Source: Azolla caroliniana | Taxonomy: Eukaryota; Plantae; Polypodiophyta | Direction: 5' to 3' | NCBI GenBank assembly: GCA_043228905.1 | Contig: JBHGNT010000010.1 | Coordinates: 1,426,001-1,490,000 of the forward strand | DNA length: 64,000 nucleotides | Translations under genes and position numbers: made by a program | Shown: positions 1,460 through 28,867 of the stretch, piece by piece | Layout of the letters: every line of letters starts with the position of its first letter | How positions within the stretch are numbered: the first letter of the stretch is position 1 | Notes under the pieces: model-generated | The model's input: only the letters and a program-made list of their open reading frames with translations | Databases searched by the model: none | Told to the model about the DNA's origin: nothing

Positions 1460-2199
1460 TGTTGGGACACAGGTCCCTCCGGATGGGAAGGGAGAAGAAC
1501 AGTGCTGAAACCGTATGACGAGTACCCGGCTACGGAGAGCCGGATGGTACAGACCCGGTGAGCACCGGATGAGGAGTACCCGGCTACGGAGAGCCAGATG
1601 GTGCAGACCCGGTGAGAACCGGATGAGGAGTACCCGGCTACAGAGAGCCAGATGGTGCAGACCCGGTGAGAACCGGATGAGGAGTACCCGGCTACGGAGA
1701 GCCGGATGGTGCAGACCCGGTGAGGAGTGCTCACCGGATGAAGAGACATATTCGTAAATATGTTTCTGAGAGTCCATCAAGGCTATATTTGTAAATAACC
1801 AAAAAGTCATATTAGTATAAATATGACTTAGGACAAACTTATAGTGTAATGTTGTTGTGGTTGTTATTCTTGTTGATGCAAGGAGAGAGAGAGCGCGTAA
1901 CTTTGTATAGAGAGTGAGAGAGAGAAAGAGGTCATTGCCTCTATTGTAACCGCCGCCTGTGGCGAGGATCGTGAGCACGAGGTCGTTGCCTCCGTGAACT
2001 CACTGTTGTACATTCTAACATAGTGATAGTTTGCAGCCTGTGGGCTGCCGTGGTTTTTCCCCTTAGTTTGGGTTTTCCACGTAAACATCTTGCGTACTCT
2101 TCTCTTCTTCGTATCGTGCATTATTTCCCATTTTCTGTGTATGATTCTAAGTTCGGTTGTGGCCGAGCGTTGCGTATAGGGAGCGTAGGGATCCCGTCA
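1460..2199 (+). repeat. 5' LTR of copia-1, containing ~4 copies of a 54-bp tandem repeat (~1515-1735)
   Basis: Direct repeat of 6101-6840. Unit approximately GATGAGGAGTACCCGGCTACGGAGAGCCGGATGGTGCAGACCCGGTGAGAACCG. Confidence 0.95.
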
Positions 2200-2228
2200 A
2201 GTGGTATAAGAGCGAAACAACACAGAAA

Positions 2229-5200
2229 ATGGACGAATCGTTGGGCGGCATGTTCAAGCTCACCGGCTCCAACTATTCAGTGTGGAAGTTGAAGATGAGG
2301 GATATGCTCGTGGTTAAAGATCTTTGGTTGCCGGTTCAGTTTGGGGACAAGAGACCGGACAAAATCGATGCCACAGTATGGGAGGTGATGCACATGAAGA
2401 CAACGGCGTACATACGGTGCTTCATCGACATGAGCCTATACAACAACTTCAATGAAGAGAGCAAGGCTCATGAGCTCTGGGAGAAGATCGGCATTATGTT
2501 TCAGAACAAAAATGTTGTTAATCAGGTTTCGGTATTCCGGAAGCTAGTAAGACTCCGGTACCAAGATGGCTCCAGCATGGCAGAGCACATGAATGCCTTC
2601 CAGGGGCTGATCCACGAGGCAACATCATTAGAGGTACCTCTCGCCGATGAGGTACTAGCACTACTCCTGCTTGGTTCCCTCCCAGATAGCTGGGAGACGT
2701 TGGTTGTCACCTTGGGCAATGCCGGGCCGAAAGGGAAACGGTTATCCCTAGCAAGAATAAAGTCGAGCTTGCTAGATGAGAAGGCGCGTCGGAAAGATAA
2801 AGATACGAGCTCCGACTCCAAAGCGCTTCTTACCGAATCGGAACGCGGAAGACATAGAAACCAAGGAAGACATAGAATCAGCAATCGCGGCAAGTGAAGA
2901 AGAGTTGATGCTCATCACCAAGGAGAGTGAGATAAACCTTGCCGGCGATGAGATGACCTGGGTGGTCGACTCCGGAGCGTCGTTCCACCTTACCCCGGAC
3001 CGGAAATGCTTCTCATCCTACTCAGCCGGTGATCACGGCTGTGTCCGGATGGGGAATGAAGGAACATGCCGAATTGTCGGCATAGGAGACGTGTGGTTGA
3101 CAACACCAACTGGATGCAAGATGCTGTTGAAGGACGTCCGACACGTTCCGGAGGTTCGTCTGAACTTGATATCAGATGGTGGGCTAGATGATGAAGGCTA
3201 CACGGGTAGCATCCGGAACGGTGTCATGAAGTTCAACAAAGAGAGCCTGATTGTGGCTCGGGCCCGGGAGGTCAACACACTGTACCTGATGAATGCCCGG
3301 TTATGTCCGGAAGAAGTGAACGTGGCATCCAACACTCCCGGTGAGCTGTGGCACAAGAGGCTGTGTCACATGAGCGAGAAGGGGATGAAGAGGCTTGCAG
3401 AAGACAACCTCATTCCAGTGAAGAACGTGCACTTGGAGAAGTGCACTGATTGTCTGGCCGGTAAGCAAAACCGGACCTCCTTCCAATCAAGGCCACCGAT
3501 GAGTCGTAATGCGCCACTGGAGTTGGTGCATACGGATGTATGTCAAGTGGACACGAAGTCACATGCAGGATCACAGTACTTCGTGACGTTCATAGATGAC
3601 CACAGGCGGAAGCTGTGGGCCACACAGTTGAAGACGAAGGATCAGGTGCTATCCGTCTTCAAAGAGCTCCACGCAAGAGTGGAAAGAGAAACCGGCCGGA
3701 AGCTGAAGGCGGTTCGAGCAGATAACGGAGGAGAATACCGGGGGCAGTTCGATGAGTACTACCGCTCGAAGGGAATCCGTCTTGAATTTACCGTGCCGAA
3801 GACGCCGGAACTAAACGGACTGGCCGAGAGGGTGAACCGGACCATAATGGAGAGGGTCCGGAGTATGCTAGCGCATGCAAAACTACCCAAGAAGTTTTGG
3901 GCTGAGGCACTGTCGACGGAGACATTTGAGATAAATAGATCACCCTCAGTACCCTTGGACGGAGACACGCCACAGAGAGTGTGGACCAGTAAGGTAGTAT
4001 CCTATCGGCATCTGAAGGTGTTCGGGTGTCTCGCGTACGTGCATGCAACTAAGGACCGGAGTGGAAAGTTAGATCCAAAGACTCGACCATGCATATTCCT
4101 CGGTTACGGTGACGATGAGTTCGGCTACAGAGTGTGGGACCTGGTCTTCAAGAAGGTATTCCGGAGTCGAGATATTATCTTCATGGAGGACAAGACGCTC
4201 GCCGACTGGGAGTCGGAGAATAAGATAATGAACTCCGAGTCGACCGGAAAGGATCGACTCTACGATGAGCAGACCCAACCGGCAAGAGACCGGTTAGCAG
4301 TCGAGGGACCAGCCGGTTACGGTGAGGATACCGAACAGGCTGAAGAAGAAGTAGAGGAAGCTGAAACCGGAACCGGCCAAGACCCCGAATCGGATTCAGA
4401 TGAAGAACAAATGGAGGAGCCGGTTACCGAAGCCCGAAGACGGCGATATCCTCTCAGAGAGAGAAGGGTGCCCCGGAGATTTCCGGATGCAGAGCATGTT
4501 CTGCTGACCGATGAGGGGGAGCCGGAAAGCTTCGAAGAAGCGAAGGATGACGCCCACAGCCGCAAATGGTTAAGTGCCATGCAGGATGAGATGGATTCCT
4601 TGCATGAGAACCATATGTACGAATTGGTGGAGTTGCCGAAAGGAAAGCGGGCACTCCGAAACAAGTGGGTGTACAAGTTGAAACCGGGAGATGCTGGCAA
4701 CCCCCCAAGATACAAAGCCAGGATCGTGGTGAAGGGGTTCTAGCAGAAGAAGGGCGTGGACTTCGACGAGATATTTGCCCCGGTAGTAAAGATGACCTCC
4801 ATCCGGACGGTGTTGAGTATAGCGGCGAGCATGGACCTCGAGGTAGAGGAGCTGGACGTGAAGACGACATTCCTTCACGGCGACCTCGAAGAGGAAATCT
4901 ACATGCAGCAACCGGAAGGATTCATGGAGAAAGGGAAGGAGCACCTGGTATGCCGGTTGAAGAAGAGCCTCTACGGGTTGAAGCAGGGCCCCCGGCAATG
5001 GTACCGGAAGTTTGACTCCTTCATGAGCGATCAAGGGTATCACAAGACGCAGGCCGATCACAGCGTGTTTGTGAAGAAGTTCGAAGGAGACAACTTCCTG
5101 ATACTCCTTCTGTACGTGGATGACATGTTGATCGTCGGACAGGACCAAGTCAAAATATGAATGCTGAAGAAGGCTCTCAACCGGACCTTCTCAATGAAAG

Positions 5201-6090
5201 ACTTGGGTCTGGCAAGACAGATGCTGGGGATGCATATTATCCGGAACCAGTCAGTGAAGCAATTGTGGCTGTCACAAAAGAAGTACGTGACAAAGGTGCT
5301 TCACCGGTTCAACATGTCAGATGTGAAACCGGTCGGATCGACATTTCCGGCAAACTGCAAGCTATCCGGTAAGCAAAGCCCGAAGACGAAAGCAGAGAAG
5401 GCGGATATGATGAAGATTCCATATGCCTCTGCCGTCGGGAGCTTGATGTACGCAATGGTGTGTACCCGACCGGATATAGGATACGCAGTCGGAGTGGTGA
5501 GCCGGTTCATGAGCAATCTCGGTAAGGAGCACTGGAACGTGGTCAAATGGATACTCTGGTACTTGAAGGGCACTTCAAATATGTGTTTCCGATTCGGCTC
5601 CGGAAAACCTCAACTTGACAGTTTCACCGATTTGAACATGTTAGCTGATGTGGATACCAGCCGGTCTACATCCTGGTATGTAATGACATATGCAGGGGGG
5701 GTTGTCTTGTGGCAGTCGAGGCTGCAGAAGACGGTTGCATTGTCAACCACGGAGGCAGAGTACATGGCGGCTGTGGAAGCCGGCAAGGAAATATTATGGA
5801 TGAAGGACTTCATCGGAGAGCTCGGTATCCGGCAAGATGAATACCGACTCTATTGCGACAATCAAAGTGCCATCCATCTTGCTAAGAATGCGGCCTACCA
5901 TTCCCAAACGAAGCATATCCAGCGAAGATATCACTGGATCCGGGAAAGAGTAGATGACCAGGAGTTCGCACTGACGAAGATCCACACGGCCAAGAACGGG
6001 TCAGATATGCTGACCAAAGTGCTAATACCCGACAAGCTGGATGCATGCCGGAAGAGGATCGGACTAGTAAGACATCCCATGCCGGAGTGA
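2229..6090 (+). pseudogene. Copia gag-pol polyprotein, disrupted
   Basis: Motifs WVVDSGAS (PR), WHKRLCH...CTDC, VHTDVC and DNGGEY (INT), YVDDM (RT), SDMLTK (RH). Frameshift with missing CCHC knuckle near 2880. In-frame stops at 4741 and 5158. Confidence 0.93.
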
Positions 6091-6100
6091 AGGGGGAGTT

Positions 6101-6840
6101 TGTTGGGAGATAGGTCCCTCTGGATGGGAAGGGAGAAGAACAATGCCGAAACCGTATGACGAGTACTCGGCTACGGAGAGCCGGATGGTACAGACCCGGT
6201 GAGAACCGGATGAGGAGTACCCGGCTACGGAGAGCCGGATGGTGCAGACCCGGTGAGAACCAGATGAGGAGTACTCGGCTACGGAGAGCCGGATGGTGCA
6301 GACCCGGTGAGAACCGGATGAGGAGTACCCGACTACGGAGAGCCGAATGGTGCAGACCCGGTGAGGAGTGCTCGCCGGATGAAGAGACATATTCGTAAAT
6401 ATGTTTCTGAGAGTCCATCAAGGCTATATTTGTAAATAGCCAAAATGTCATATTAGTATAAATATGACTTAGGGCAAACTTATAGTGTAATGTTGTTGTG
6501 GTTGTTATTCTTGTTGATGCAAGGAGAGAGAGAGCGTGTAACTGTGTACAAAGAGTAAGAGAGAGAAAGAGGTTGTTGCCTCTATTGTAACCGCCGCCTG
6601 TGGTGAGGATCGTGAGCACGAGGTCGTTGCCTCCGTGAACTCACTGTTGTACATTCTAACATAGTGATAGTTTGCAGCCTGTGGGCTGCCGTGGTTTTTC
6701 CCCTTAGTTTGGGTTTTCCACGTAAACATCCTGCGTACTCTTCTCTTCTTCGTGTCGTGCATTATTTCCCGTTTTCTGTGTATGATTCTAAGCTCGGTTG
6801 TGGCCGAGCGTTGCGTATAGGGAGCGTAGGGTTCCCGTCA
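6101..6840 (+). repeat. 3' LTR of copia-1
   Basis: Direct repeat of 1460-2199 with scattered substitutions, preceded by the PPT. Confidence 0.95.
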
Positions 6841-6867
6841 GTAAGCATATCGAAGGTGTTACCAACA

Positions 6868-8394
6868 TAATGGTTATCACTCATTAATGGCAAAACTATT
6901 TGGTTGTATAATGGAATCAAAGATAAGTGTATGGGCAGAAAAAAATGGTAAGAGGGGTTATGGACAAGCTGGTTTTCAAAAACACCATAGCACCATTGAT
7001 CATCTTGTCACTCTTTGAGTATTAATGGAGGAAAGTCGCCTTCGAGGTAAAGGTTTATATTGTTGCTTTGTAGACTTCAAGAAAGCTTTTGATATGGTAC
7101 CTCGTGAGCATCTTTGGAGGCAGATGGAAGAACTTGAGGTGCCAAGTGAATATATGCTTGCAATTTCCCGAATATATGAGAAGGTTATATGTTGTGTGCG
7201 TATGAGAGATAAACTTTCAAATTTTTTCAATAGCACTATTGGTGTTAAGCAAGGATGCCCACTCTCACCAACATTATTTGGTCTATGCATTGATGAATTA
7301 GAAGAAATGGTTACCAAGTTTGTAAAGGAAGAATGTGTTAAAGAAGTTGCCATTGGGAATGTTGTGATTATGCTTTTGTTATATGCAGATGATGTAGTGC
7401 TTTTTGCAAATACTTCAGGAGATGCACAAAAGCTTATGAAAGCATTGGAAATTTTTTGCATGCATACTAGATTAAGTGTCAATAGCTCTAAAACAAAGAT
7501 TATGCTTGTGAAGAGTCAAAAAAGAGATAAACCATGCATTATGTACAACAATCAGCCACTTCAATGTGTGGAAAGTTTCAAATATCTCAGCCTTGAAGTT
7601 CCTACAAATTATAAATGGAATGAATGTACTACACGTTGCTCAGAGACGGTAAATGAGCATACTATGCATTTGAGAACACATGCAATCTTGGAGATATTAA
7701 GTGTTGGGTCCTCAAGAAATATCTTTTTGACACTTTGGTGATCTTGGTTCTTCTCTATGGGGTGGTAGGATCCCCAAATCTACGTGGAAAGAGTTTGAAA
7801 ATGTCCAAAAACATTTTCTTACAAAGTTTCTACAAGTTAAGAAACAAACGTCCTACATCCTCCTCCTCCTTGAGACGGGATCGCTTCCCATTAAGATCAT
7901 GGCTATGGAAAGGGTTGTTGAATACATGCTTAAGGTTCAAAAAAGCCCCTCACATTGACTTCCTAGAATTGCATGCGAAGCAAGCAAAAGGATCCAAAAG
8001 TCGCATAAAAGCAAAATTTTGTGTTCCAGTTGGATGCAAGATTTAGAAAAATGGTTTGGTAGATGGGATGGAGACACTTGCTTCATGATGCGTCACTAGA
8101 TTCCTCTGTAAATGAGGCCTTTTTGCAACGCCAATGTATCATGACATGGGACAAATGTGGTGGCTCACACTTCACACATTATACTACAAATGTTGCACCT
8201 AACTACAAAACCATATTCTTCGCGGAACGGGGAAACCGTACACATTGATACATGTTAGAGCCCATCCCGATATTTGTCATTCAAACCATTGCTTCCATGC
8301 GACTTAGCTCGCACACATTGAGATGTGAGACGGGGCGTTGGGGCACAAGTGATGAGAGTGGCCGACTATGCACACTTTGCCCTAAACAAGTTCG
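6868..8394 (+). mobile_element. RTE-like non-LTR retrotransposon, RT region (5' part, interrupted by transposon copy A)
   Basis: ORF 7025-7741 has FVDFKKAFD, GVKQGCPLSPTLF and LLYADD. Frameshifted C-terminus leads to LCTLCPKQV. Confidence 0.88.
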
Positions 8395-8430
8395 AACACG
8401 TTCGCGTTCACAAGTGGAAGGATCGCGCAT
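8395..8430 (+). repeat. Left terminal inverted repeat of copy A
   Basis: AACACGTTCGCGTTCACAAGTGGAAGGATCGCGCAT, the reverse complement of 17613-17648 with two CpG-type transitions. Confidence 0.95.
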
Positions 8431-8752
8431 AAATGGAAGGATAAGAGAAATTTTAGGGGTTTTTGAATGATTTTACAAAACACGTTGATACCAGTATCAT
8501 ACATGTTCAAACATACTATGAAAAAGGTTAAAAATCCACTATTTTCGTGATTTAGAAGTAACTAAAAAAAGACGAATTTCAAAAAGATACATTCTCAATT
8601 TATATCACAAACTTTACAACCAATGTTATTTTATAGGAAACGATTTTTTAGAAATCATAAGAATTCAAAACACATGATTTTATATTACTCGATTTGTTAC
8701 AAGCGGAATGTAGTTACACTTAATAGCCAAATATACATTCATGATCACTCCT

Positions 8753-11532
8753 TTACGGAGAATCACTACTATAACTAATATACAATGACGATTCTTCCTC
8801 ATCATCCTCGGATGTACCAATCAATGCATTATCTTCGTCATAAACCAAATGGTTTGACTCTAGATTATATGTAGTAGATCTCGTTTGCCTTTGACTCGAG
8901 CCACCTTGTAGACCTGGTAATTTTTCTTTTATTATATCTATTGTTGACTTCCTTAATCGTCCGGCTTTTGTAAGTGTGAAGTCGTACACGATGATATCCA
9001 CATCAGAGATATCAAGGGTCGAGGTGTTACGAATGTTTCGCTTCCTCTTCCTACCTCCCCTTCTTGTTTGGCATTCAATCATCTCCAATGTATACTTACC
9101 TGTAAAAGCATTTGCACTTCTAGTGTTGTACCAATGAACATTTATAGACTTGATCGTGTTTTCTATTTCATGCATTAGCACTTCTAGAATTTTACCAACC
9201 CAAAATTGGTGGCCATGTGAGTTCTCATCAGCCGGCGTTGCAATCAACATCCCCGCGGTGAGCTCTTGCAAATTTCCTTGCCGTCTAGCTTCGGCTGCTT
9301 TGGTCATCCTTGGTCCCACATAAATGTCTCTTTGTTGTGGATGGACCAAGCTGTCATTAATCGCATTTACTAGTTGCTCTGGACTTCTATTTACGCGATC
9401 ATGTTGCAGCGACCATGTGAATGGCATTTCCAAATTCCAATTATCAACAGATACACAATTGTCTATAATTTCTTTCTGATCACTATAAAATACATCCCAC
9501 CATGACGTGTCTTGTTGTGCGGCATATTTCTTGGCGGCCTCAATATGCTTTCTTTTTTCTTCTAAGGCTTGGAGCCATGACCGTTTTTGTTCTGATACCA
9601 AGTCACTCTGCAACTGTCCTTTCTTCTCAATTGGCATTTGCTTAGCTCCATGGACAATTGTACTCGGCATACAAAGTAATAACTGGCAACCACCTTCAGG
9701 TTCCCATGTTGTAGAAGATGAATATTGTTTAGCATACAAAAGTGTAGAACCACTTATTCCATTTTTCTTTATCATAAAAATGTGATTGAAACTTATATTG
9801 TTTAACTGAGCAAGCACTTTAACATTCCCACCACCCCCATCTAATATATATCTCTTTAAGTCATATACCTCCTTCAAGTGTAACACTTTTGGGCGTGGTG
9901 TATAAGCATCACAAATGACATCAAATAGTTTAGGTAAAGTGAAAGCATCATGCCGAGACAATTGCTTGGAGAATGTGCTAAACATCTGATCTATATGGTC
10001 ATGTGTGTGGCCAACCAAAAGGAAATTGACTTTCACTTTCCTAAACAATTCTAGGTTGACCAACATACTTAGATAGCCAAATACAGTTGAATTTTTGTTC
10101 TCTCTAGCAGTATTGTCCAATTGAATGTATAGAACAGGGGGGAAAGGTTGTCCCCAAGACATCAAAACTTGGTAAATCACTGTAACTGTTAGGTTAGGGT
10201 CATTGTGAACATTGGGGTAAGTAATGAAGACGTGAGGTCGAACAGACCTATTATAAGCCAAGCATCCCACCAAGTGCATTTGAACAAGGCACTCATCATT
10301 GACATCTTTGGGGAGCCTCCGCATATGCGGCAATCATGTCTTCTTCTGGTCCATGCCATCTATCATTAAGCACATGTATTGTTCGGGCCTCTTCAAACAC
10401 TTCTCTCTATGATGCATCGCCTTCTTTCGTTCTAAGGATTGTGCCTCACGATGCTCTTGTAGTAACTTCTTACTCGTATCCTTTTCCATTGATGTCTTTG
10501 CACCTTTAGCCAAACTTTTAAGATTTGCACAAATGGAGCAATACCCCATACATACTTTACGAGGAATAATAACATTTGAAAACCGAGCTCTCCATAATCT
10601 TGTGAATTGGCTATAGGTGATAGACTTATTACGTGAGCCCAGCATATCAGATCGATAGACATCATAAACTTCCCGACGTGTATAATTATCAGAAAGATGC
10701 ATCCTACCTGTAGTGGGCATTACTTCACAATTTAACTGAAAGTAAGTTTTCATCCAGCCAATAGCATGTCTTCCAATTGCACCTTTCATATTTGGAACCT
10801 CTTTACAATTGAGCATCTGATCCCCGCTAAGTAGACGTTGTTGTACTCTATGTAGCCGCATGTTACTAACACATAACGCAATTTTGAATGCAACTCTACA
10901 TATCTGTTGCGCATGGAAGATATAATACTCGAATGATACTTTGATCCCCTTACATTTGTCAGATACTAGTTGCATATGTGACCCGAGGTAAGTGTCTTGC
11001 TCATCACCGGTCATCGAAAAATAGTATCACCTTAATTCTCGCAACTTTGATTTTCCAATCATAGACATACAACCACGGGCACAACATATTTTTTTGACAT
11101 CAAATCCAATCTGTTTATCTGATGTCACCAAGCTAAATCTAGCCAGACGAATTCTTCGTGGGATTCTTCTAATATGCATAGGGCTCCCAGATTTCTCTTC
11201 CTGCATAGAGGTTGGTGTAACCTTGTTACAGTCTAATTCTCTGTTGTGACCATCGCCAATGTTATTCAATGTTTCCTAGGCACTTCCTTCATTCTCGGTA
11301 TCTTTATTAATATCGTATTCTTCAATAGAGAACTCTTCACATGTGTCATTATTTACATTCCTTGTAGATGAGCTCAGACAATATTCTTCGATAGAATATG
11401 GTGAGTCGGTCGACAGACAATATTCTTCAATCGAATATGGTGACTCTGTTGACAAACAATAGTCTTCAGTAGAAAACGATGGTCTGAAGACAAACAATAT
11501 TCTTCAATCGAGAACGGTGAATCTTCACTCAT
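8753..11532 (-). pseudogene. DDD-type transposase, Sola-like by inference (~925 aa reconstructed), with 3 in-frame stops and a small 5' frameshift
   Basis: ORFs 11276-11497, 11027-11269, 10334-11014 and 8753-10333 share one frame. Motifs CCARGC, CSIC, MIDGMDQKKT, QLDNTARENKN and FLLVGHTHDHIDQMFS. Lies inside TIRs with a 4-bp TSD. Confidence 0.85.
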
Positions 11533-12393
11533 GGCTTAAGGTCTAGATAGGGCTCTCTAAGTTATGTGCTTAGGGTAAGGAAAAAAACTAGTAAGCTCCT
11601 CTCTAAACATATACTCCTCTCTAAACATAAACTTCTCTCTAAACAAAAGCCAAATCAATAGAATGTCTATATTATGTAATATTCTATTAATACAATACAT
11701 CAAAAAATTATTTTTAATAAAGTAATTGTGCTTAAAATATCAATTATTATATAAACTAGATCTATATGAAGTTAAATCAAGTAAAATATAAAACTAATCA
11801 TTAACAAGCCATGAATATGTTGGATTAATGTTAAAATCATTGGCTAATTAATGGCACCCATTTTGATATAGAACGTCTCACTCATTGGTTCTTTAATGCT
11901 CACCATTTTAAATATTAGACTTATCAATCATTGGTTAATTCATGCCAACATCTTTAATACATAGCATTTGAGAGTCATAAAAATTGTTGCTTTTAGTAAT
12001 CAATCATTGGTACATTCATGAACCTCTATCATTGTCTCCTTCATAACCTTTGAAGTCATTGTAGGTTGTTATGACTATAAAAGATTGATCAATATGTTAG
12101 TTTGACTTTGTAATCATTAATACAATCATAAGTTACTCTAGTTAATGTGACTATGGTTACCAACTAACTATCCTCAAAGTTACCAACCTTGGTTAAGGTG
12201 ACTATGGTTACTTTAACCAATGTGGTCAATCCCTATAAATAGGAAGACCTCGTCATATTTCACTCACAAGAGCGTACAGAGCGTACAGAGCGTACAGAGC
12301 ACACAGAACGTAGAGAGCACACAAAGCACACAAAGCACACAGAGCACAAAGCACGAAAGCGCGATCTCCGCCTCCACTTCCACACGATCAACC
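11533..12393. promoter_or_regulatory. Divergent promoter region between the transposase and MTase genes
   Basis: AT-rich. CCAAT at 12217 and TATAAATA at 12234. Repeated ATCATTGG motifs at 11830-12010. 9-bp repeats in the putative 5' UTR at 12269-12360. CTCTCTAAACA x3 at ~11600-11645. Confidence 0.55.
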
Positions 12394-15300
12394 ATGTCTT
12401 CAAAGAGAATCGAGCGCGAGGACTCTAGGTAGGCCTCTGACACTGTGGACATTTTTGTAAATATGTTTCGTCGCTCAAGAACTCGATACGCTGTATCGAG
12501 TTCATAATTTGTTTTTCCTTTTTAAACGGGAACTCGATACGGCGTAGCGAGTTCCTGTTTAAAACCTACACTTTAAACAGGAACTCGATACGGCGTATCG
12601 AGTTCCTGTTTAAAACCTAAACATTAAACAGGAACTCGATACGCTGTATCGAGTTCCCGTTTAAAACCTACACTTTAAACACGAACTCGATACGCAGAGG
12701 AACTCGATACGGCGTATCGAGTTCCTGTATAAAAGAAGGCTCTGAGAGAGAAAATTTGTGTTTTTGGGGTAACAAATAATTATGGTGTGGAAAAGATATC
12801 AAATTGTCTGGCAAAATCAGTCTTTTTTATGTTGACTTTCCTTACTTTTTAAAAAAAACATGCTCTAATTATAGGTGTTTTATGACCTACTTTAGCTTAA
12901 AATAGTAGAAAATGATCCACAAATTGCCTTTACGATAGCAAATTCTCCTCAATACAGGTTTGGAATCTATATAAGTCATACCTACTATTTAAAAGAATAT
13001 ATAACCCTATTTACTTATTACGATATATATTTTCTAGGTTGAATAGCCCTACCTATAATAGATTTTTGAATATAGGACTGCTAGTGGGAACTGTTCTTCA
13101 TGTTAATATACAACCTTAATCTACGTGACTACCTAACGTATGTTTTTGCATATACTTTCTTAAATAAGTCGTTTGAGAACCTGTCGAACCGACCCGTGAA
13201 GAAAATAAAGCTTCGCATACAAGGTTCTCCAATCGAAGCCCAGACCAAGGTAGCTCCTGAGACCATGAAGAGAGGAAAAAAGCTTCTCTTTAACGAAGAG
13301 ACAAAATCTCAGCCACATAGTGATGTTAGCCAAAAGAAACTTGTCGCCGCTACTGGAGGTGAAGACCTTCCTGACCGAGATCTAACGGACAAGGAATGGT
13401 GTATGCAATATGTCGACTCAAAGAAAATGTCGTATTGTATACAGCAAAGAAGAAGGGTGAGGGGCAGCTTGGAAAGGAAACCCCATTTATGTATGGCCGT
13501 ATTCTACGATTTGACTACGAAGATGCAGATTTGGCCAACATACTGGTAATGATAGAGTGCTCCAAGGGGGTACGTAAAGTGTTCCGTTCAGAAGACCTTT
13601 TAGTAAAGGAATCTTGTGGGCCAGAAGCGTTCAAAAAAGCACTTGATAGCTCACAAAACCTTATTGTTACCTTGAGGCCTTATATACAAGGCCATGTAAC
13701 TCTAAGAGATGAAGTGCCCTCCCCATTGAAGGCCACAAAAAGGGTATCCAAAGTCCAGTCAAGACCACCAAAGAAGAAGACAACCAAAATGTCGGATATG
13801 GATTCAACAAGTGAAAACGAAGAGGAGGATAATAAGGGGACGCCAGGAGCTAAGCTGGCCTCGGGTGTTTTGTCATCCGAGCAGAATAAGATAAGGAGAG
13901 AGTTAATGCAACGGAAACTGGTCAGGAAAGGGCAAGTGTTTAATTTGCCTATAACACACATCCATCGGCCCCCTATTGATGAAAAAACAGGTCGACGACC
14001 ACTTGAGATTAGAGAGCCACACCGCATGCATGTTCAAAATCTCAAGAAAAAAATGAAAATTAATCCTCATGCCACTGTGGTGCCTTTTATGTTATGGTAG
14101 ATCCTGAAGAATGTGAAACCATTGAAGATTTTGATATTAGAAAGCATGGTCAATATAATTATTTTGTCATTGGTGGATCGCATTTTGCAGAGGCACGTCG
14201 GCAACTTGTGAGAGAACATCCAACAACTTTCTTCTTCAAGTATGCAGAGTGCAAAATTTATGTTGGGCTCACAACCGAAGAGGCTAAGCTGTTGGCATGG
14301 GACCATAATAATGATAATGACTATAGGCAGAAAATGTCGTCCATTGAGCGTATACAGTTCTTCCACCACGAGTATTTAGACGTGAAACAAAAGTTTGGTG
14401 TGAAGTTACATCCAGGCCTTCGACGTCAATGTCTGCATGAAGTCGGCATTGTGGTAGATGATAATGTTAGGTCCGATGGTCTTCGAAAGTATGAGTCTTG
14501 GTTTCAATTGGCGTTTAGAGATGGAGAAGTATGGGACCTACAAGATCAAATCTTCTCAATGTGGGAGAATAAGGAGGTAAAGGGTCAACGACAAAAGAAA
14601 TGTAGGGTTGACCCTCAACTAGAGTTAAAGTCACAAGCCGCCAAGAAAATTGACTTGACAATTGAAGAAGCGGCAGACGACATGAAGCTGTCTCTATGGA
14701 GAGCGATGCAAGGTATTAAGGATGAGCAGCTTCTTGTGTCGGTTTTGTCAAGGGTTGTGGCGAAAGATTTAAGCCTTGAAGAAATGGTCACTAAGTTCAA
14801 TAAGTAAGTCTGTCAAATACTGAAATTGTAGTCTATCTGGTGTAATTCAAAGTTCTAATCTTGATTTCTAATTTTACAGTCATAAGGTGTACATGAAGAT
14901 CCAAGAAGTTATGATGAAACAACTTGGATGTATAACTTGGGAACAAGTGACCGAGGATTATCCTCTAACGTCTTCGTATAAGGCGTTATCAGAGTATTTT
15001 ATTGCATTCAAGGATTGGGTTAGTATTCATGGTTTTTCATTACCCTTTCATCATATGTAGAGCTTGTATAATAATACCTGATGTCCTATTGCTTCTATTA
15101 GAAACCGTGTCGAGGCAAGAAACAAGGAGAAGTTAAGGATATACACGATTTCCCTACATCCTCCCTTGCACATCTCGAGCGAGCTAGAAAAGAAAAGGAT
15201 CGTCGCTTAGTCAAGGCGTACGAAATGGAGGAAGATGGCTCCTTTAAAAAGTTTAGCCACAAAAAAGATATTACGAGAGATCTTTACTACAATGTGGTTT

Positions 15301-16391
15301 GCGGTGATGTCATCGACTTGATCCAGAAGGTGCCAAAGAAGGAATATACGCTAATGATTGCGGATATTCCTTACGGATTTCGAATGGCTGGGTCATCATA
15401 CAACAATGAACCGTTTAGGTTTAAACATTTGGAGAAGATGGTCAAGGATTTCGTTGAGCTAACGACCGCATCCTTGTGGCGAATAGTTGTCTTTCATAGT
15501 ATGGACCAAGGATACTCGGTAGCTCAAGCTTTGAGATCTCGTTGCCATGGCATCGAGAACCTTGCATGGTAAGGATTATTTATAGGTGTCTTTCACTATA
15601 TTGCATTTCTTAAGGTTGTTGAATCTATTCTTAACTCGATGAATTATTTTTTATAGGATCAAGACCAATGTAAATAGAGGGCCAACTTTTCGGTTCGTTA
15701 ATGCCATTGAATACATAACGGTTGGCTACTTCGATGAAATTAAGAAACAAAGAATCAAAGAGCATTCTAATGAAGTGGGAGGTTCAAATCTGTTGGTATA
15801 TCCAGCAGTGACACGGAAATTGCGACATGTCACCACGACAGAACGGGGACTTGTCAACCCATACCAAAAACCTCAACGACTTATGATGCGCTTGATCGAG
15901 ATGTTTTCTGTCGAAGGAGACTGGATATTAGATCTCTTTTCTGGCACAGGTATTCCTCGAACTAGGGTAACGATATTGAGATAACCAATCCCTTTTTTTT
16001 CGTTTGACAACTAAATCTTCTTGTTACTTACATCACAGGAACTACGTCTGCATGTGCATTGAAGCTTTTTAGAAATACAATTGCATTGGAGAAGGACGAG
16101 GACCAAGTTATATTTATTAATATGCGGATTAAGGCTTTGTGGGAATGCCCAGACCAGGATGAGGAGGTCGGTGCAAAGAACCTTGCCAATACAGAAAGGT
16201 TTCAACCTGCTTCACGAGAGCCTATTCCTCCATTAGCCGGCAAACCGGGGGAGCTAATAGAGCTTGATGATGAGCTTATAGAAGATATTTCGTTGGCTCG
16301 GCCAACAGGGGAAACCAATGCACGTATAGCCGAAGACAGTTCTACACAAGATGATGAAGAAAATAACGTTGCTGAATTGATTGCTATGTAA
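12394..16391 (+). pseudogene. Six-exon gene: ParB/Srx-like domain fused to a beta-class N6-adenine/N4-cytosine DNA methyltransferase (~970 aa), disrupted
   Basis: Exons 12394-12428, 13168-14803, 14880-15018, 15102-15568, 15657-15949 and 16039-16391, with GT-AG introns (the intron 1 acceptor appears mutated AG>AA). Motifs YFVIGGSHFAEARRQL, GDVIDLI, LMIADIPY, WIKTN, NPYQKP, GDWILDLFSGTGTT and RNTIALEKD. Frameshifts at ~13420 and ~14090. Confidence 0.88.
12478..12730. repeat. Tandem palindrome array in MTase intron 1 of copy A, 51-bp period
   Basis: AACTCGATAC-N3-GTATCGAGTT cores at 12480, 12531, 12582, 12633, a half site at 12684, and 12701. Arms extend to TTTAAACAGG...CCTGTTTAAA. Confidence 0.93.
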
Positions 16392-16527
16392 TAGACTCTA
16401 TGAAGAATATGATATTGACGATTTGTTAAGATTTCACATTATTAATACAAATTTTGGGTTTTACCTAGTGGATTCTATTATTTATAATCTTCTATATGTT
16501 TCAATTTTATTTTTATATACTTGATTA

Positions 16528-16940
16528 GTAGATTTATGACATTGGTTTCACCGCGTGCGTAGCTGACTACCAAACTTATGGAGAAACATGAACTAGTTTA
16601 AATGGAGGCTGATTTTGGTGCAAGCTAACCTTAACAGAACATGGCCCTATAATTGTTGCCATGACTGTCCATGTTGTTATTATGGATCTTTGTCTTCTAT
16701 TGTTAAAACTATTATGTTTCTATTCCATTATGACATTGGTAGATTTATGACATTGGTTTCACCGCGTGCGTAGCTGACTACCAAACTTATGGAGAAACAT
16801 GAACTAGTTTAAATGGAGGCTGATTTTGGTGCAAGCTAACCTTAACAGAACATGGCCCTATAATTGTTGCCATGACTGTCCATGTTGTTATTATGGATCT
16901 TTGTCTTCTATTGTTAAAACTATTATGTTTCTATTCCATT
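16528..16940. repeat. Near-exact ~200-bp tandem duplication downstream of the MTase gene
   Basis: GTAGATTTATGACATTGGTTTCACCGCG...TATTCCATT starts at 16528 and again at 16739. Confidence 0.9.
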
Positions 16941-17612
16941 GCTGCTTAGATTGTGTAGTGTGTTGATAATGGTTCCAGTTGCGTTATCGTTCGGAGTTTG
17001 ATCTTGTGTGAATCACCTAATAAATAGAATAGATCAATTTTAAATACAGGTATGAAAGCCTAATAGGTTTGTTATTTCCACGACATTATCCTAAAGTTCA
17101 CTGCCTTACATTGTCCACAATTATAAACATATGGTTTGATCCCATATGAACAAACTGAGGAATAGATTAGATCAACTTTAAATACAAGTATTGAATACTT
17201 TAATAAGTTAGTTATTCCAATCACTTATCCTAATGTGCACTATCCTACATTTTCCACAATTACATACATGCACGTATGGGTCAAAGTATAAATTATATCT
17301 CATTTTATTAGTATGGATACAAGTACACCTGATATTTTTGTAAAACTTACCTAATTAATATAAGTCTTTAAGTTAGTGTTTCCCTTGTCGCACAGTAGTG
17401 ACATATTGAGCCATAGTTGAACTTTATTATGCCTACATTAACTTATCAACATGTCTAAACTTGCATGATTTCTAATGATCTCCACTCGTAGATCTATCAT
17501 GTATTTTTATATTTGCAAATTCTCATCAAGTTGAGGAACATGTGATACTAGTGCATCCAATTTTTGTAGAGAGGGTGTATTTGCTTCGTTTTAAGAAGAT
17601 TCTACAAGTGGA

Positions 17613-17648
17613 ATGCGCAATCCTTCCACTTGTGAACGCGAATGTGTT
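17613..17648 (-). repeat. Right terminal inverted repeat of copy A
   Basis: ATGCGCAATCCTTCCACTTGTGAACGCGAATGTGTT, followed by the TTCG TSD. Confidence 0.95.
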
Positions 17649-17923
17649 TTCGAGAGTCTGAGTATCACACTTTGATACAATGCTCTGCCTTTTATCATAT
17701 TCGACCATGCTTTCTACATCTCTTTGATCGAGCCCAATCCTTGCACGAATTTCTCTCACAACCACGATGTGCACTCTCGATTGCAACATTCATTGGTAAA
17801 GTTCTTGAACATCGAGAGTCGCTACTCACCTTCACACGTATCACGTTAAATGTAATATTTTTGGTCTCATAGGTCATATTTGACCTCCGAAGACGATAAT
17901 ATAATCTATCTATCTATCTATCT
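17649..17923 (+). mobile_element. 3' end of the RTE-like LINE with (ATCT)n tail
   Basis: Continues the frame RESEYHTLIQCSAF. Microsatellite tail at 17904-17923 is typical of RTE-clade 3' ends. Confidence 0.85.
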
Positions 17924-18377
17924 CACAACCACATTAGTGCGTCACTTCAGCTACTACAATTTCATTTCGTGTGATCATTCACTCTATCTCTGGAATTCTC
18001 CTAAAGAAGGAAATAACACTGGCAAAGATCATTTCGTCGTCGTCGTCGCCCGCTAAACGTTGCACACCACCACATTACCGCCGCCTACACATCAATCCAC
18101 TGCATCGCTGATTCTAGTTTGGGTGTGTCATCGACAACCAAGAACAACCCGACAATAAACCTAAAACAATGAATTCATCTCCTCCATAACCACTAGCGGA
18201 TAGAGGCCCGATGCTTTTCTGCGCCTGTGTGACACGCACATCGCGGTGTTTGGCACGTGTGTCACGTGCCACACGACAACGCGTACCTTTGCGACAACGC
18301 ATACTTGCTTGTAAATGCATTTTTGCTTCTAGTGTTATACCAATGCACCTTTATAGACTGGATTTGATTTTGGGTAT

Positions 18378-19584
18378 TGTGAAATCAATTTTTGCTCGTA
18401 AGAAAAGATCGCGGGAAATACATTGGATACTAAGGTGTATAAGAATAAAGCATGATATGAAAGGTTTAAGAGTTAAAAGACGAAGGAACTTAAAGGGATA
18501 TAAAGTTAGAGGCGTTTTTGAAAAGTAGAAAAAGCAAGAAAAAAGAAAAAGGAAAAAAGACGCAACAAAAGTAGGGCAGAGAAAAAAGCTCATAACTTCT
18601 TCATCTAATATCCAAATTTCAAAAGAAACGATTCACAAGAAAGCTAACAAAGATAGCTTTCTTGTATAATAAATTTGAGATGACAAAGAAGAAATAGTTA
18701 TATAAAAAATGCCTCACATAAACTTGAGGATATGTAAAAAGAAAAGAAAAGAAAAAAACAAGAATAACGCTATTATGGACTAGTGTCATTGAGATTAACT
18801 TCGTTCTTTGGTGGGTTGTTCTTTATAGAGTCCAAGAAGATTGTATTCTTTTCCTAAATAGTATATTGAATTATTCTTTTCTCTTCCTCTTCTCTTCTCT
18901 ATCTTTTTTCTATATCTCCTATCATTTTGGCGCTCGAGGGGCTAAATGTGAAGTCAATTTTTGTTCGTAAGAAAAGACCATGGAAAATACTTTGGAGCTA
19001 AGGTGTATATGAATAAAGCACAATATGAAAGGATCAAGTATTAATAGAGTAAGGAACTTAAAGGGATATAAAGTTAGAGGTGAAAAAGTAGGACAAAAGA
19101 AAAAAGAAAAAAACGCAAAAAAATCGAGGTAAAGAAAAAAGCTCATAACTTCTTCACCTCATATCCAAATTTCCAAAGAAAAGATTCGTAAGAAAGCTGA
19201 CAAAGAGAGCTTTGTTGTATGACAAAACAGAGATAATGATATGAAAAATGCATCACATAAACTCGAGGATATATAAAAAGAAAAGAAATGAAAAAAGCAA
19301 GAATAACGCAACCAAAAACCTATAAATATGTGGGGTAGGAAGAATAGAAGATCGACAAGAAGGGAGGAGTAAAAAGAAGGCTAGAATAAGTAAGAGGAGT
19401 CTTTGTAGAAGAAAGAAAGAAGAAGGAAAGACTATCATGAACTAGTGTCATTAAGATTAAAGTAATTCTTTGGGGTTGTTATTTTTGGAGTCTAAGAAGA
19501 TGGTATTGTTTTCCTAATAGTATATTAATGAATTCCTTTCTCTTCCTCTTCCTCTTCTCTATCTTTTTCTATATCTCTCCATCA
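18378..19584 (+). mobile_element. Two-LTR mini-element (TRIM-like or internally deleted LTR element) inserted in the copy B transposase
   Basis: Direct repeats 18378-18924 and 18947-19584, each TGTGAA...ATCA. 22-bp interior TTTTGGCGCTCGAGGGGCTAAA (PBS-like plus purine run). Flanks GGTAT/GTTAT. Transposase homology continues on both sides. Confidence 0.7.
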
Positions 19585-19851
19585 GTTATCATGCATCACC
19601 ACATCTAAAACCTTACCAATCCAAAATTGGTGCCCCAACTCATTATCATCAATAGGTGTAGCAATTAATATCCCCACCTTGAGTTCTTGCAAATTTCCTT
19701 ACCACCTAGCTTTAACTATTTTTGTCATCCTTGGTTCAACATAAATGTCTCTTTGTTGTGGATGGAGCAAGTTTTCATTAATCGCATTAGGTGCAGGAAG
19801 AGGAGTCTGAGAATCACGAGAGTGCTATATAGACCATGTAAAGGGGATTTG

Positions 19852-19939
19852 TGTTGGAGACAAGGTCGTCTATGCGGAAGATCAAGAAGCATTCGATTCT
19901 GTTCTGTACCTGCGTATGACAGTTTCTAGGTCGTTGCAC

Positions 19940-19982
<43 letters not shown>

Positions 19983-22900
19983 CACAAAACGACTCTTTCT
20001 ATTCCATAAAGCAATAATACAACCCAACCTTACAAAAAGGTTACAAGGTCACTATATATAGTGACAGACTTAGGGCATCTACCATTTATGCTAATTACAC
20101 AAATGGCCCAAACTTGATCTATACAAAGGGATAGTGTGAATACGTCCATTATACACTTGTATTCGACACTCCCCCGTAATGGGCGTATACATGGGTTATC
20201 TAAGATTACAGGCATAAACCTAGGTTCTCAGACATATCAGTTTTGTTCGAGTCGGCAGGGTCCGAAGGCAGAAGACCGAACTGGTCGGGTCGGAAGAGTT
20301 GAAGCCGATCATTAAGGAACTGATGTCGGTTGTCGGAAACCATTCTGCGATGTGTCCGGCTCTAACCAGACTGGTTTGTCGTTACGCCCATCTGATGCCG
20401 AAGGGACCGAAAGCGGTCTGCCGAAAGACACTTGGTCATTCCATCTGCGACATTGTCGGTTGTGGATATTTTCTCTAGACCGATTTTCCCTGAAATGACG
20501 CAGTCCCGAACGAAGTGATATCGAACGTCGATATGTTTGGAGGCGTTGTGGTGAACCGGATTTTTCGACAAGGCAACAGCACCTTGACTGTCGCTATAGA
20601 CAACTGGGGCCGAGTCATGGTCGACTTGTCGAAACGTGTGCGCCAGCCGGCCGAGCCACAAAGCTTCTTTTGCAGTGTCGGACGCAGCTACATATTCTGC
20701 TTCGGTCGTTGAGGTCGCTGTGCACTCCTGAAGTTTCGACTTCCACGAAATTGCTCCATTGCCGAATTTGAAGCAGTATCTAGTTGTTGATTTCCGACTG
20801 TCTATACAGCCGGCGAAGTCCGAGTCGGTGTAACCGACTACGCCTGTAGTTGAGTTCGGGCCGAAAAGAATGCCGTGGTCTTTTGTGCCAGCCAGATATT
20901 TGAACACATGCTTGACTGCGTTCCAATGCGATCGACCAGGATTGTGCATAAATCTGCTAACGACTCCTACGGCATGAGAAATATCAGGCCGTGTCGCGAC
21001 CATCAGGTACATAAGGGAGCCGACTGCCGGTGCATACGGTACCGACTTCATATCTTCCCCCTCCGGACCGGATGTCGGGCAGTCTCGCTGAGAGAGCCGA
21101 AGATTCATGGGGAGCGGGGTTGAAGCAGATTTGGCTGATTGCATGTTGAAGCGTTCCAAGACACGTCCGATATAGTCGGTCTGAGACAAAAAAAGATGTC
21201 GTTGATCGCGATGCCGACTAATCTTCATGCCAAGTATGTGTCGTGCCGGACCGAGGTCCCTCATGGCAAACTTCAACCGCAGTTGCCGAATGAGATCGGC
21301 AAGTTCGCCCGCGTGGCGTCCAGAAATTAGCATGTCGTCCACGTAAATGATGAGGAAGATGGGTGATCCATCTTGAGCTGTGTTGGTAAAAAAACAATGG
21401 TCCTCATCGCTTTTTGAGAAGCCGATCGATTGGATGAAGTCGTCGAACTTCTTGTACCATTGTCGCGGTGCCTGTTTGAGGCCGTATAGACTCTTCCTGA
21501 GTCGGCAGACTAGATGTTCTTGGCCAGTTGCCACGAAGCCTTTTGGCTGCTCCATATAAATTTCCTCTTCAAGATCACCATGGAGGAATGTTGTTTTGAC
21601 ATCTAGCTGAATCAGCTCCAAGTTGTCGGCTGCCACTACGCCGAGTAGAAAACGAAGAGTTGTCATTTTCACCACTGGTGAAAAAATCTCGTCGAAGTCG
21701 ACGCCATATTCTTGTCGGAAGCCCTTCGCAACTAATCTGGCCTTGTACTTTGGGGTGGTCGAATCAGACGTCTCTTTTAGTCGATAAACCCACTTGCAAG
21801 GAAGAGCACGTCGGTTCCTAGGTAATTCGACCAGATCCCAAGTCTTGTTTGCCCGAATGGAGTGCATTTCCGACTCCATCGCCAGATGCCAGGTGGCGGA
21901 ATCGACAGATGTCGATGCTTCTTCGTAAGACGTCGGTTCGCCAGCGTCGGTGAAGAAAATTCCAGGAGAATACCTCTCCGGAGGTTGCGACAGTCTCTCG
22001 GATCGTCGAGGTATGATTGGACTGGTCGCATCGGGTATCGAGGTCGGATGGTCCGAAAGCTGCTGTGCCGAGTCAGAGTTGTCCGAATCGGTAGTGTAAG
22101 GTTCAGCTACCCGTGAAGCTGACCGTGTGTTAAGAGCGGGGCCTTCTTGAAGGGTCGGCACATCGGAAAATATTACCCTTCGGACTTCGATCGGTGTTTT
22201 GACTGATGGATTCATAGCCGACTCGTTGAACACAACGTCCGAACTTCGGACGATTTGTCTGCGTTCGGGATCCCAGAGTCGGTATCCCATTTCGCCGTCG
22301 GATCCATATCCAAGGAAAATGCATTTCCTGGACCGAGGTGCAAGTTTTCGGCGATCATCTTTCGGAATAAGGGCGTACGCCTCGCATCCGAAGATCCTCA
22401 GCTTGTCGTAATTCGGCTTACTGCTGATCCATAGTTCCTGAGGAATTTGAAGTCCTAGAGGTCTGCTTGGCGACATATTGATTATGTGTACTGCCGTGAG
22501 TAGAGCCTCTGCCCAGAAGCCATCTGACAGTCCGGAGTGTTGGAGCATGGAAACTATCCGTTCTTGGATTGTCCGATTCATGCGTTCGGCAATCCCGTTT
22601 TGCTCCGGACTGTGTGGTGCCGTAAATTCACGTCGGATGCCGCGTTGTCGGCAGAATTTGACGAATTCTTCTGATTTGAACTCTCCCCCATTGTCGGTCC
22701 GAAAGCATTTCAGTTTTCGGTCGGTTTGATTTTCTACCATAGCGAGCCAATCGGAGAAGATCGAGAAGACACGATCTTTGGTGCGAATTGGATAAGCCCA
22801 CACCTTTCGAGTCGAATCGTCAATAAAACTGACGAAGTAAGAGGCACCGCCGAGAGACTGATGCGGCATTGGGCCACAGACGTCCGAGTGGACCAAATCG

Positions 22901-25171: not shown

Positions 25172-25214
<43 letters not shown>

Positions 25215-28104: not shown

Positions 28105-28353
28105 GTAGTATCGAGTTGGAGTCCAACTCGATACATTGTATCGTGATGGAGTCCCAACTCTACTGCAATGTATTGAGTTGGAGTCCCAACTCGATACAAT
28201 GGATAGAGATGGGACTCCATCTCGATACAATGTCTGGAGATGGAGTCTCATCCCGATACAATGTATCGAGTTGGAAGGTCAACTTGATACAATGTATCGA
28301 GTTGGGTCCCGAGGAGCTACAACTTGATACAATGTACCTTGTTGAGGCCCAAC
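28105..28353. repeat. Palindrome array in copy B intron 1, ~31-bp period, continuing at 35335-35395
   Basis: AACTCGATAC-AAT-GTATCGAGTT-like cores at 28125, 28156, 28188, 28219, 28250, 28281, 28321, 35340 and 35371. Confidence 0.88.
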
Positions 28354-28867
28354 CAAGGTTGTTAGGTACGGTACGGATACCATACATATATAACGTATTA
28401 ATATGCATATAGTACCTCCCAATTTAAAAATACGTTAAATACATTTTCTTAATATGTTAAATACTTATAAAATACGTAAGATACGTATTTTACATATAGT
28501 ACGTTAAATACTTCTAGAATTTGAAAATTATTTACCTTTCTAAAAAAAATCTATAATGTTGTAAAAAACATCTATGTTTACACAATTTTGTGATGTACAG
28601 TATAGTTCTACATCCTTTTCTTTGGTATTATAAAATCATAAGCAATACACCTTGGTATTATAAAATCATAAGCAATACAAAAGTTGATGGTTGTTTTGGT
28701 GAGAAGAAGAACCCCACCAAAACAAAGCTAATGCTAACCATAAATTCATCCATCCATTCATGAGGAGAAAGGAACCTAAAAACATTTTCTATTCGTGGGT
28801 ATTTGCAGCCTCCATGCCGATGAGAGATGGCTGAAATAATACTTTGGACATCGGAATCGTTGTACAC

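Follow-up and report, generated by a model that had tools for sequence, protein, structure and literature searches.

A 64,000-nucleotide stretch of the Azolla caroliniana genome (contig JBHGNT010000010.1 of assembly GCA_043228905.1, positions 1,426,001–1,490,000, forward strand; hereafter the window) contains, at positions 8395–17648, an element that is no longer functional and belongs to a cut-and-paste DNA transposon family present in high copy number in streptophytes. The family is defined by terminal inverted repeats (TIRs) of about 36 bp that begin AACAC, by a 4-bp target site duplication (TSD), by an intronless gene for a DUF7869-type transposase of 870–915 amino acids with a conserved D..D(N)..D signature and by a divergently oriented, intron-bearing accessory gene for a ParB-like/methyltransferase (ParB–MTase) fusion protein. 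Here, we refer to this element as copy A and to a related element at window positions 18295–39675 as copy B. We consider it probable, with appreciable room for doubt, that the family encodes a ParB–MTase protein that binds the transposon's own palindromes and methylates the transposon's own DNA.

A conserved gene pair

The head-to-head arrangement of transposase and ParB–MTase genes is found in seven elements: copies A and B, two metagenome contigs of 11 kb and 15.6 kb (L003 and L005) with intact transposases (908 and 865 amino acids) and intact open reading frames (ORFs) corresponding to the long first coding exon of the accessory gene, and elements from the ferns Ceratopteris richardii (L006) and Adiantum nelumboides and the liverwort Riccia sorocarpa (L008). 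Homologues of the ParB–MTase are also present in Chara, Ginkgo and Diphasiastrum. An earlier reading of the window, made without database searches (the sequence-only reading), held that the MTase gene belongs stably to the family and had not been captured just once. The recurrence of the pair in these seven fern and liverwort elements, with nonsynonymous change far below synonymous, bears this out.

Between subfamilies, the proportion of synonymous differences (pS) is 0.63–0.93 (synonymous sites are saturated, the expectation at saturation being 0.75 per site), and that of nonsynonymous differences (pN) is 0.03–0.15 in the ParB–MTase exons and about 0.15 in the transposase, with the lowest values of the whole element (0.03–0.09) in the MTase exons. 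Because nonsynonymous change lies so far below synonymous change, the accessory gene is, judged from these comparisons, under purifying selection, with constraint as strong as that on the transposase. Synonymous differences between the window and L003 or L005 amount to 0.84–0.93 per site, above the saturation expectation, a possible sign that codon or base composition has shifted from one subfamily to another.

The family, which can be considered a conserved and selected candidate DNA-modification writer, is abundant in fern genomes and is found also in a liverwort, a lycophyte, Ginkgo and Chara; about 2,500 contigs per DNA run, in two organisms, match 3.6 kb of the element. In ferns the accessory gene has GT–AG introns at conserved places, which suggests long residence in eukaryotes. 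Gene predictions in fern, Ginkgo and Chara list such genes as host ‘DNA methylase’; they are better treated as transposon genes.

The methyltransferase domain

To assign domains, the accessory exons were searched singly, and the intron-less Chara frame, a Ginkgo database model and the intact first-exon ORFs of L003 and L005 served as stand-ins for the whole protein. The Pfam family PF01555 (gathering cut-off 26.7 bits) matches the window exon segment 15775–15984 with 33.8 bits (4.3e-8), the equivalent exon of L003 with 39.6 bits and a colinear Ginkgo protein with 65.7 bits (7.6e-18). The motifs in copy A follow the order DIPY, NPYQKP, DLFSGTG, which is the permuted order of the β-class, and motif IV takes the form D-[ILVA]-P-Y across the family, the second residue being I, L, V or A in place of P.

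A homologue in Chara braunii, encoded in a single intron-less frame of 929 codons and possessing the same MTase motifs, provides a view of the fold. The model of its MTase domain (predicted local distance difference test score, pLDDT, 87.8) was matched to solved structures, with CcrM the best (4e-13), followed by M.BceJIV, M1.HpyAVI, MboIIA and RsrI (1.4e-10); all five are N6-methyladenine (m6A or 6mA) enzymes. The 4-methylcytosine (4mC) enzymes N4CMT (8s9o, 1.6e-10) and PvuII (2.9e-9) are also matched. The β-class MTase of the sequence-only reading is thus supported by the Pfam match on the window exon, by the motif order and by the fold of the Chara homologue, and we take the C-terminal part of the accessory protein to be a predicted permuted β-class N6/N4 amino-MTase.

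Searching 1.84 billion representative sequences with the MTase exon (phmmer) identified 124 relatives, and those that could be named are all from streptophytes (Chara, Riccia, Diphasiastrum, Adiantum and Ginkgo). Phage MTases, at 26–30% identity, are the sole non-plant sequence relatives found. At least 11 paralogues are present in Chara; a search with a 12-sequence profile, capped in its number of candidates, listed sequences from Chara only and so has no bearing on red algae. In Diphasiastrum complanatum (L009, 25237–25869) a cytochrome P450 gene model (KAJ7514498) takes in, as its C-terminus, a fragment of the accessory gene comprising the short exon and the MTase exon; the model is likely to be an annotation chimera.

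The ParB-like domain

The region preceding the MTase was examined through the intact equivalents of the long exon in L003 and L005 (523–549 amino acids, that of L003 having 523), whose ParB parts share 85% and 75% identity, respectively, with the window. The model of the L003 exon has pLDDT values of 70–90 over residues 210–450 and finds ParB and Noc by Foldseek at 2.7e-6. In VIA alignments its N-domain superposes on Caulobacter ParB with Z 11.0 and 2.3 Å over 100 residues, and on sulfiredoxin with Z 7–8. Whole ParB and Noc chains align with residues 229–523 at Z 10–11 with a root-mean-square deviation of about 10 Å, and the DNA-binding part alone matches the Spo0J–parS complex (4umk) at Z 5.5 and 6s6h at Z 3.8. 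The ParB/sulfiredoxin-like (Srx-like) domain that had been proposed to precede the MTase is therefore recovered in the fold of the L003 equivalent. A profile search of the PDB with the ParB exon gave chance-level matches only. The accessory protein's N-terminal region (residues 44–150 of L003:5102–6670; window ~13400–13700) is modelled as a five-strand fold of low confidence with weak PH-like matches (Z ~3).

Palindrome arrays

Copy A has an array of ~5.5 palindromic units with a 51-bp period at 12476–12734, between its transposase and accessory genes, and the half-site AACTCGATAC occurs 11 times in it. Across the window the half-site is matched 24 times, where chance would give 3.1; only two of these matches fall outside the copy A and copy B arrays, and none is at the termini. 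Copy B has the same half-site, at 28108–28330 and 35353–35380, on either side of an insertion, and the L003 array, also between the genes, has the core seen in copy A.

Arrays are intergenic in every lineage, and their sequences are lineage-specific with a related CAACTC/CAAGTC core. The Ceratopteris array (AAGTCGATGCC-W-GGCATCGACTT) is accompanied by a second in an intron of the MTase gene (5544–5892), the Adiantum array (TGTATTCTAGAATACA) lies between the genes, and in Riccia palindromes of the form GGCAACTCATGCG...CGCATGAGTTGCC are found between the genes, in introns and near both ends (L008 positions 3851–3919, 5837–5916, 8811–9002, 10761–10889 and 13688–13728). Unlike Riccia, the fern copies in the window have palindromes in the central array only. 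Copy A and L003 have a 23-bp palindrome core in common that is 100% conserved, and the remaining intergenic DNA of the two is unalignable. On this pattern the palindrome is a selected cis-element that changes with lineage, as would be expected for the site of an element-encoded dimeric DNA-binding protein.

A candidate self-marking transposon

How might these parts work together? In the reading we favour, the ParB part would bind the element's own palindromes as a dimer, much as ParB and KorB bind parS and operator sites, and the bound protein would bring the fused MTase to the element, where it would methylate the DNA. The most likely target is N6-adenine, given the D at the start of motif IV and the fact that, among solved structures, m6A enzymes come nearest in fold. 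Such a mark may serve the transposon by opposing host silencing of the divergent promoter. Alternatively, it may tie transposase expression and the use of the ends to replication, in the manner of Dam hemimethylation in the bacterial elements IS10 and Tn5.

A further-reaching version of this scheme is conceivable, and we offer it only tentatively: a self-addressed writer, in a lineage more than 450 million years old, in which ParB loads on, and possibly spreads from, the parS-like array so that 6mA is deposited over the element. This private mark would keep the divergent promoter active against host 5-methylcytosine (5mC) and histone H3 lysine 9 (H3K9) silencing, or would license transposition on newly replicated, hemimethylated DNA alone. 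The reality and function of 6mA and 4mC in plant nuclear DNA are disputed, and we know of no dedicated plant DNA amino-MTase outside Marchantia sperm. With a candidate address, the palindrome array, built into the element, the self-marking hypothesis is directly testable; if it is true, plants would have a natural 6mA writer of their own that can be addressed by sequence, and the family would be one origin of genuine 6mA in their genomes.

A number of points weigh against the self-marking scheme. That the element's DNA is methylated, and at which base, is something that we infer. Motif IV is D-[ILVA]-P-Y and not DPPY, so that a different chemistry is possible, and the MTase fold comes not from the window protein but from a Chara homologue 25–28% identical to the window exons. 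The Pfam search recommended in the sequence-only reading succeeded for PF01555 on the window exon but not for the ParB part: ParBc (PF02195) finds no match, DUF6551 matches weakly (E 0.02–0.07) at the GGSH motif, and in place of the CTP-binding GERRxRA box the protein has GGSHxAEARRQL. Around the Chara genes, transposase-like sequence is either 9.5 kb away on the same strand or not found within 10 kb. Copy A itself is broken in both genes. The splice junctions were to have been checked against RNA, and here the outcome was negative: none of the listed runs that hold the sequence is on record as RNA, a run of unknown kind (X15) yielded only contigs that follow the genomic DNA through two introns, and X20, a run presumed to be RNA, yielded nothing. 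Splicing and expression are therefore unconfirmed, the former being read from homology and GT–AG sites only. Finally, it is equally conceivable that the palindromes serve the transposase or the promoter.

This last point is the core of the alternative that survives best, in which the palindromes are internal transposase sites, or a bidirectional promoter or enhancer, and the ParB–MTase acts elsewhere, either genome-wide or at the TIRs. The Riccia palindromes near both ends and in introns resemble subterminal transposase sites, and sequence by itself assigns the palindromes to neither protein. However, solved ParB proteins dimerise on palindromes and the accessory protein has a predicted ParB DNA-binding domain; the half-site is missing from the termini in the window; and in red algae a ParB-like gene is paired with inverted repeats across unrelated transposase superfamilies (see below), tying the arrays there to the ParB gene and not to the transposase. 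We therefore regard this alternative as somewhat doubtful, though it deserves to be taken seriously.

A second alternative retains the architecture but has the enzyme write N4-methylcytosine. Repeated switches between 6mA and 4mC have taken place among PF01555 enzymes (PMC8885841), N4CMT and PvuII are good fold matches to the Chara model, and 4mC is the activity of both characterised eukaryotic PF01555 enzymes, bdelloid N4CMT and Marchantia DN4MT1. What makes 4mC the less likely product, and in our judgement an unlikely one, is that every family member has D as the first residue of motif IV, where N4C enzymes typically have S (TSPPY in DN4MT1), that m6A enzymes make up all five of the best-matching fold families and that no Marchantia polymorpha protein is among the named sequence matches.

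More improbable still is that the accessory protein is a structural cofactor, acting in DNA binding or synapsis or as a ParB-like nuclease or nucleoside triphosphatase, with an MTase that is inactive or works on RNA or protein. The variant DIPY motif would fit such a role, ParB/Srx-fold proteins include nucleases, kinases and CTP switches, and some MTase domains borne by eukaryotic transposons have been judged inactive (DIRS1, PMC4738411). Against this, motif IV, NPYQKP and the S-adenosylmethionine (SAM)-binding FxGxG are all kept from Chara to ferns, and it is the MTase exons that have the element's lowest pN. It is scarcely credible that the MTase gene was carried along by chance or belongs to the host next door, or that the region is bacterial or phage contamination: tailed phages typically have ParB–MTase fusions and the nearest named Atlas clusters are phage (scores 0.87–0.88, a lead only), but the gene lies inside the TIRs, has GT–AG introns, is linked to the transposase in the seven fern and liverwort elements, has phage relatives only distantly similar in the MTase and, in a phage search with the ParB part, none at all, and is set among plant retrotransposons near a pectate lyase gene.

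Relationship to known systems

The closest known parallel to the self-marking scheme comes from red algae. There, Plavaka, Zisupton, Mutator and Fanzor-encoding elements carry a gene joining a PF01555 MTase of the N6-adenine type to a SET domain, a gene combining a ParB-like domain with a 2-oxoglutarate (2OG) oxygenase, and adjacent tandem inverted repeats; self-binding and self-modification have been proposed in the Bostrychia preprint (bioRxiv 10.1101/2025.02.11.637652). This PAG2/PAG3 cassette, found in Bostrychia moritziana and others, resembles the plant cassette in bringing together a PF01555 MTase, a ParB-like protein and inverted-repeat arrays in a DNA transposon, and both have been conserved over long times; the two are likened here by description. 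The red-algal cassette comprises two proteins (MTase+SET and ParB+2OG oxygenase) plus PAG1, whereas the plant family has one polypeptide, and Pfam finds no SET or 2OG domain in any plant-family exon or homologue scanned. The carriers also differ: CACTA/Plavaka, Zisupton, Mutator and Fanzor elements of 17–19 kb in red algae, and a DUF7869 element of ~9 kb with two genes in streptophytes. The module of ParB, PF01555 and inverted repeats is thus not a red-algal oddity but a recurrent strategy of eukaryotic DNA transposons.

Fusions of ParB_N and N6_N4_Mtase domains in phages and prophages have the same order as the plant protein, with ParB N-terminal and the permuted amino-MTase C-terminal. The plant gene differs in that it is interrupted by introns, is extended at length on the N-terminal side, ends in an acidic tail and sits in a eukaryotic transposon. 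A survey that covered the MTases of ParB–terminase loci includes no streptophyte or transposon-borne member of such kind (Iyer et al. 2016, PMC4738411). The plant family has its Pfam family, its permuted fold, a bacterial-type origin and a eukaryotic genome in common with bdelloid N4CMT and Marchantia DN4MT1, and N4CMT was stated to be without eukaryotic homologues (Rodriguez et al. 2022, PMC8885841). Both N4CMT and DN4MT1 are single-copy or tandem host genes outside transposons, with TSPPY or a chromodomain fusion, in contrast to the mobile plant family with its D-x-P-Y motif and ParB fusion. We considered whether DN4MT1 might be a domesticated derivative of the family and rejected the idea: there is no named match from Marchantia polymorpha and the motif IV class differs.

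Other transposons also carry DNA-modification or anti-silencing factors, among them VANDAL elements with VANC, fungal Plavaka and KDZ elements with TET/JBP, and giant-virus mariners with MTases. These involve other enzymes and other transposases, and in none does a single protein unite a ParB fold with an amino-MTase. Such a cassette also goes unmentioned in an atlas of active TIR elements across plants. It would nevertheless go too far to describe the architecture as near-unprecedented, given that the red-algal cassette has been published, as have giant-virus mariners that carry MTases and Sola2 elements with Fanzor as a passenger (Bao and Jurka 2013, PMC3627910). What is new here is the fusion of ParB and MTase in a single protein, the DUF7869 carrier and the streptophyte range; the transposon-borne combination of ParB and PF01555 is of a kind already known.

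Membership of the Sola superfamily (Sola1–3; Bao et al. 2009), to which the sequence-only reading had also pointed, is not established. Sola elements, like the plant family, have a 4-bp TSD and a DDD-type signature without a Pfam transposase family, and Sola2 elements may have passengers (Fanzor, PMC3627910). The 4-bp TSD of the plant family fits, but the hallmark target of Sola1 is AWWT (PMC3845634), which matches none of TTCG, ATCT and TTTA, and Sola1 is rejected on this ground. Sola2 is unlikely: the DFa-2 motifs LMDFKEN, SDGAKHFK and GKSDVD (compared by eye) are unlike the IDGMDQ, LDNTARENKN and GHTH..D of the transposase described below.

Ends of the element

A repeat search identified the TIRs of copy A at 8395–8430 (left, + strand, beginning 5'-AACAC) and 17613–17648 (right, − strand). 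Each is 36 nucleotides long, 34 of the 36 positions are complementary, the pair is unique in the window and shuffled window sequences gave no match to the pattern. Identical TTCG tetranucleotides, read directly at 8391–8394 and 17649–17652, flank the element. The 5'-AACAC terminus is common to copy A, the Ceratopteris and Adiantum elements, L003 and L004. In Adiantum nelumboides both TIRs (beginning AACACTCG) are flanked by TTTA, and the Ceratopteris richardii element lies within a (TCTA)n microsatellite whose phase (ATCT) fits a 4-bp duplication and neither a 2-bp nor a 3-bp one. Because a 4-bp duplication is confirmed by these two related elements, that of copy A is not due to chance. The TIRs and TSD first noticed in the window are accordingly upheld, as is the observation that they enclose two divergent genes only, the transposase on the minus strand and the spliced gene on the plus strand.

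L003 was left out of the TSD count, as its flanks (ATTT and TTGT) differ, probably through collapse of a repeat during assembly. The Ceratopteris microsatellite is long, flanking the element at L006 positions 3000–3572 and 13067–14000. In copy A, a non-coding 211-bp tandem duplication (16524–16940, 99–100% identical) is found between the MTase stop codon and the right TIR.

The transposase

The intronless transposase gene of copy A occupies 8753–11455 on the minus strand (frame 11455→8756) and matches the DUF7869 family (PF25273) at 3e-52. Its frame is colinear over 900 codons with two intact proteins from other assemblies, P0128 (908 amino acids, 70% identity) and P0127 (912 amino acids, 81%). 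Three motifs stand out: IDGMDQ (10346–10363), LDNTARENKN (10091–10120) and GHTHDHIDQ (9986–10012), all on the minus strand. In an alignment of 17 DUF7869 homologues from plants, an oyster and metagenomes, the D, N, E, N and K of LDNTARENKN and the GHTH..DQ columns are almost invariant, and the three motifs together read as the D..D(N)..D signature typical of RNase-H-like transposases. The minus-strand DDD transposase that had been predicted is therefore confirmed at the level of family and motifs. A profile search of the PDB with the transposase gave chance-level matches only.

Intact DUF7869 homologues of 865–917 amino acids are numerous. The copy A gene has three in-frame stops (11276–11278, 11027–11029 and 10334–10336) and is therefore a pseudogene. 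No MTase was found near the oyster DUF7869 gene, and thus the ParB–MTase cassette is not universal to DUF7869 transposases.

Two further features of the transposase deserve mention. A 39-bp tandem repeat (3.4 copies, window 11378–11508) in the 5' coding part encodes SP(Y/F)S(I/V)EEYCLS units, which are also present at the N-terminus of P0128. At the C-terminus (window 8756–9400), a module FWxxKV...VHWY...GKY is kept in all aligned plant DUF7869 transposases and could be a small β-barrel reader or targeting domain.

The accessory gene of copy A

Five coding exons of the accessory gene, all on the plus strand, are backed by protein similarity to four other elements and by GT–AG junctions with fitting phases. 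The long exon (13167–14803), recognised from ORFs and relatives, encodes the N-terminal region, the ParB N-domain (about 13924–14333, placed by the fold match of the L003 equivalent, with the motif GGSHFAEARRQL at 14172–14207) and the predicted ParB-type helical DNA-binding part (about 14334–14803, from the fold model of the L003 equivalent); its 5' limit and start codon are uncertain. There follows a short exon (VYMKIQE...FKDW, 14880–15018), with 67–91% protein identity in L003, L005 and L006. The first of three MTase exons, identified by homologues and junctions, spans 15102–15568 and contains the motif IV DIPY (15363–15374). The second (15657–15949), supported by PF01555 and its junctions, contains NPYQKP (15856–15873) and the start of DLFSGTG (15931–15951), which is completed across the intron. 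The last (16039–16391), assigned by homology and junctions, begins TTSACALK and ends with the acidic tail and the stop codon.

Six exons had been proposed for this gene. The five above are supported, and the sixth, a 5' exon, is not verified. Conservation of a basic stretch, RPVKKIKLR, begins before the first ATG is reached, so that an additional 5' exon is possible. When copy A and L003 were compared for such an exon, the palindromes were the sole conserved sequence between the transposase and the long exon.

In copy A the long exon is split into three overlapping ORFs (frames 2→1→0). Contigs of other genomic copies have one extra base at 13423 and another at 14089, and copy B and all relatives read through at the broken positions; for these reasons we attribute the damage to two 1-bp deletions in copy A, near 13423 and 14089.

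Copy B and the surrounding sequence

Copy B, on the plus strand and identified by its homology to copy A (~72% nucleotide identity), is truncated at its 5' end. Its transposase is in two pieces (18196–19851 and 25343–27116), its palindrome array (28108–28330, resuming at 35353–35380) is split by a ~7-kb insertion, and its ParB–MTase gene (35662–38398) has stops of its own. The right TIR lies at about 39640–39675. No left TIR was found for copy B, the homology beginning at ~18295, which corresponds to ~9086 of copy A. The description of copy B as a second, diverged copy with the same layout holds for the order of its parts, but its left end is absent and two insertions, one of them a Copia element, interrupt it.

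The Copia element (19852–25383), which lies in the transposase, has long terminal repeats (LTRs) that are 100% identical over at least 300 bp and an intact gag-pol ORF of 1341 amino acids (20362–24387, minus strand); the insertion looks very recent. The ~7-kb insertion in the array (28330–35350) includes an ORF with a zf-RVT domain (29385–30425), pointing to a retroelement of the non-LTR type.

The rest of the window (1397–7741, 45130–46410 and 53131–53721) is rich in transposons. A degraded Copia element has 54-bp repeats in its LTR-like ends, and there are reverse transcriptase (RT) fragments and a Gypsy-type RT–RNaseH ORF; a pectate lyase fragment is the sole host-type gene seen.

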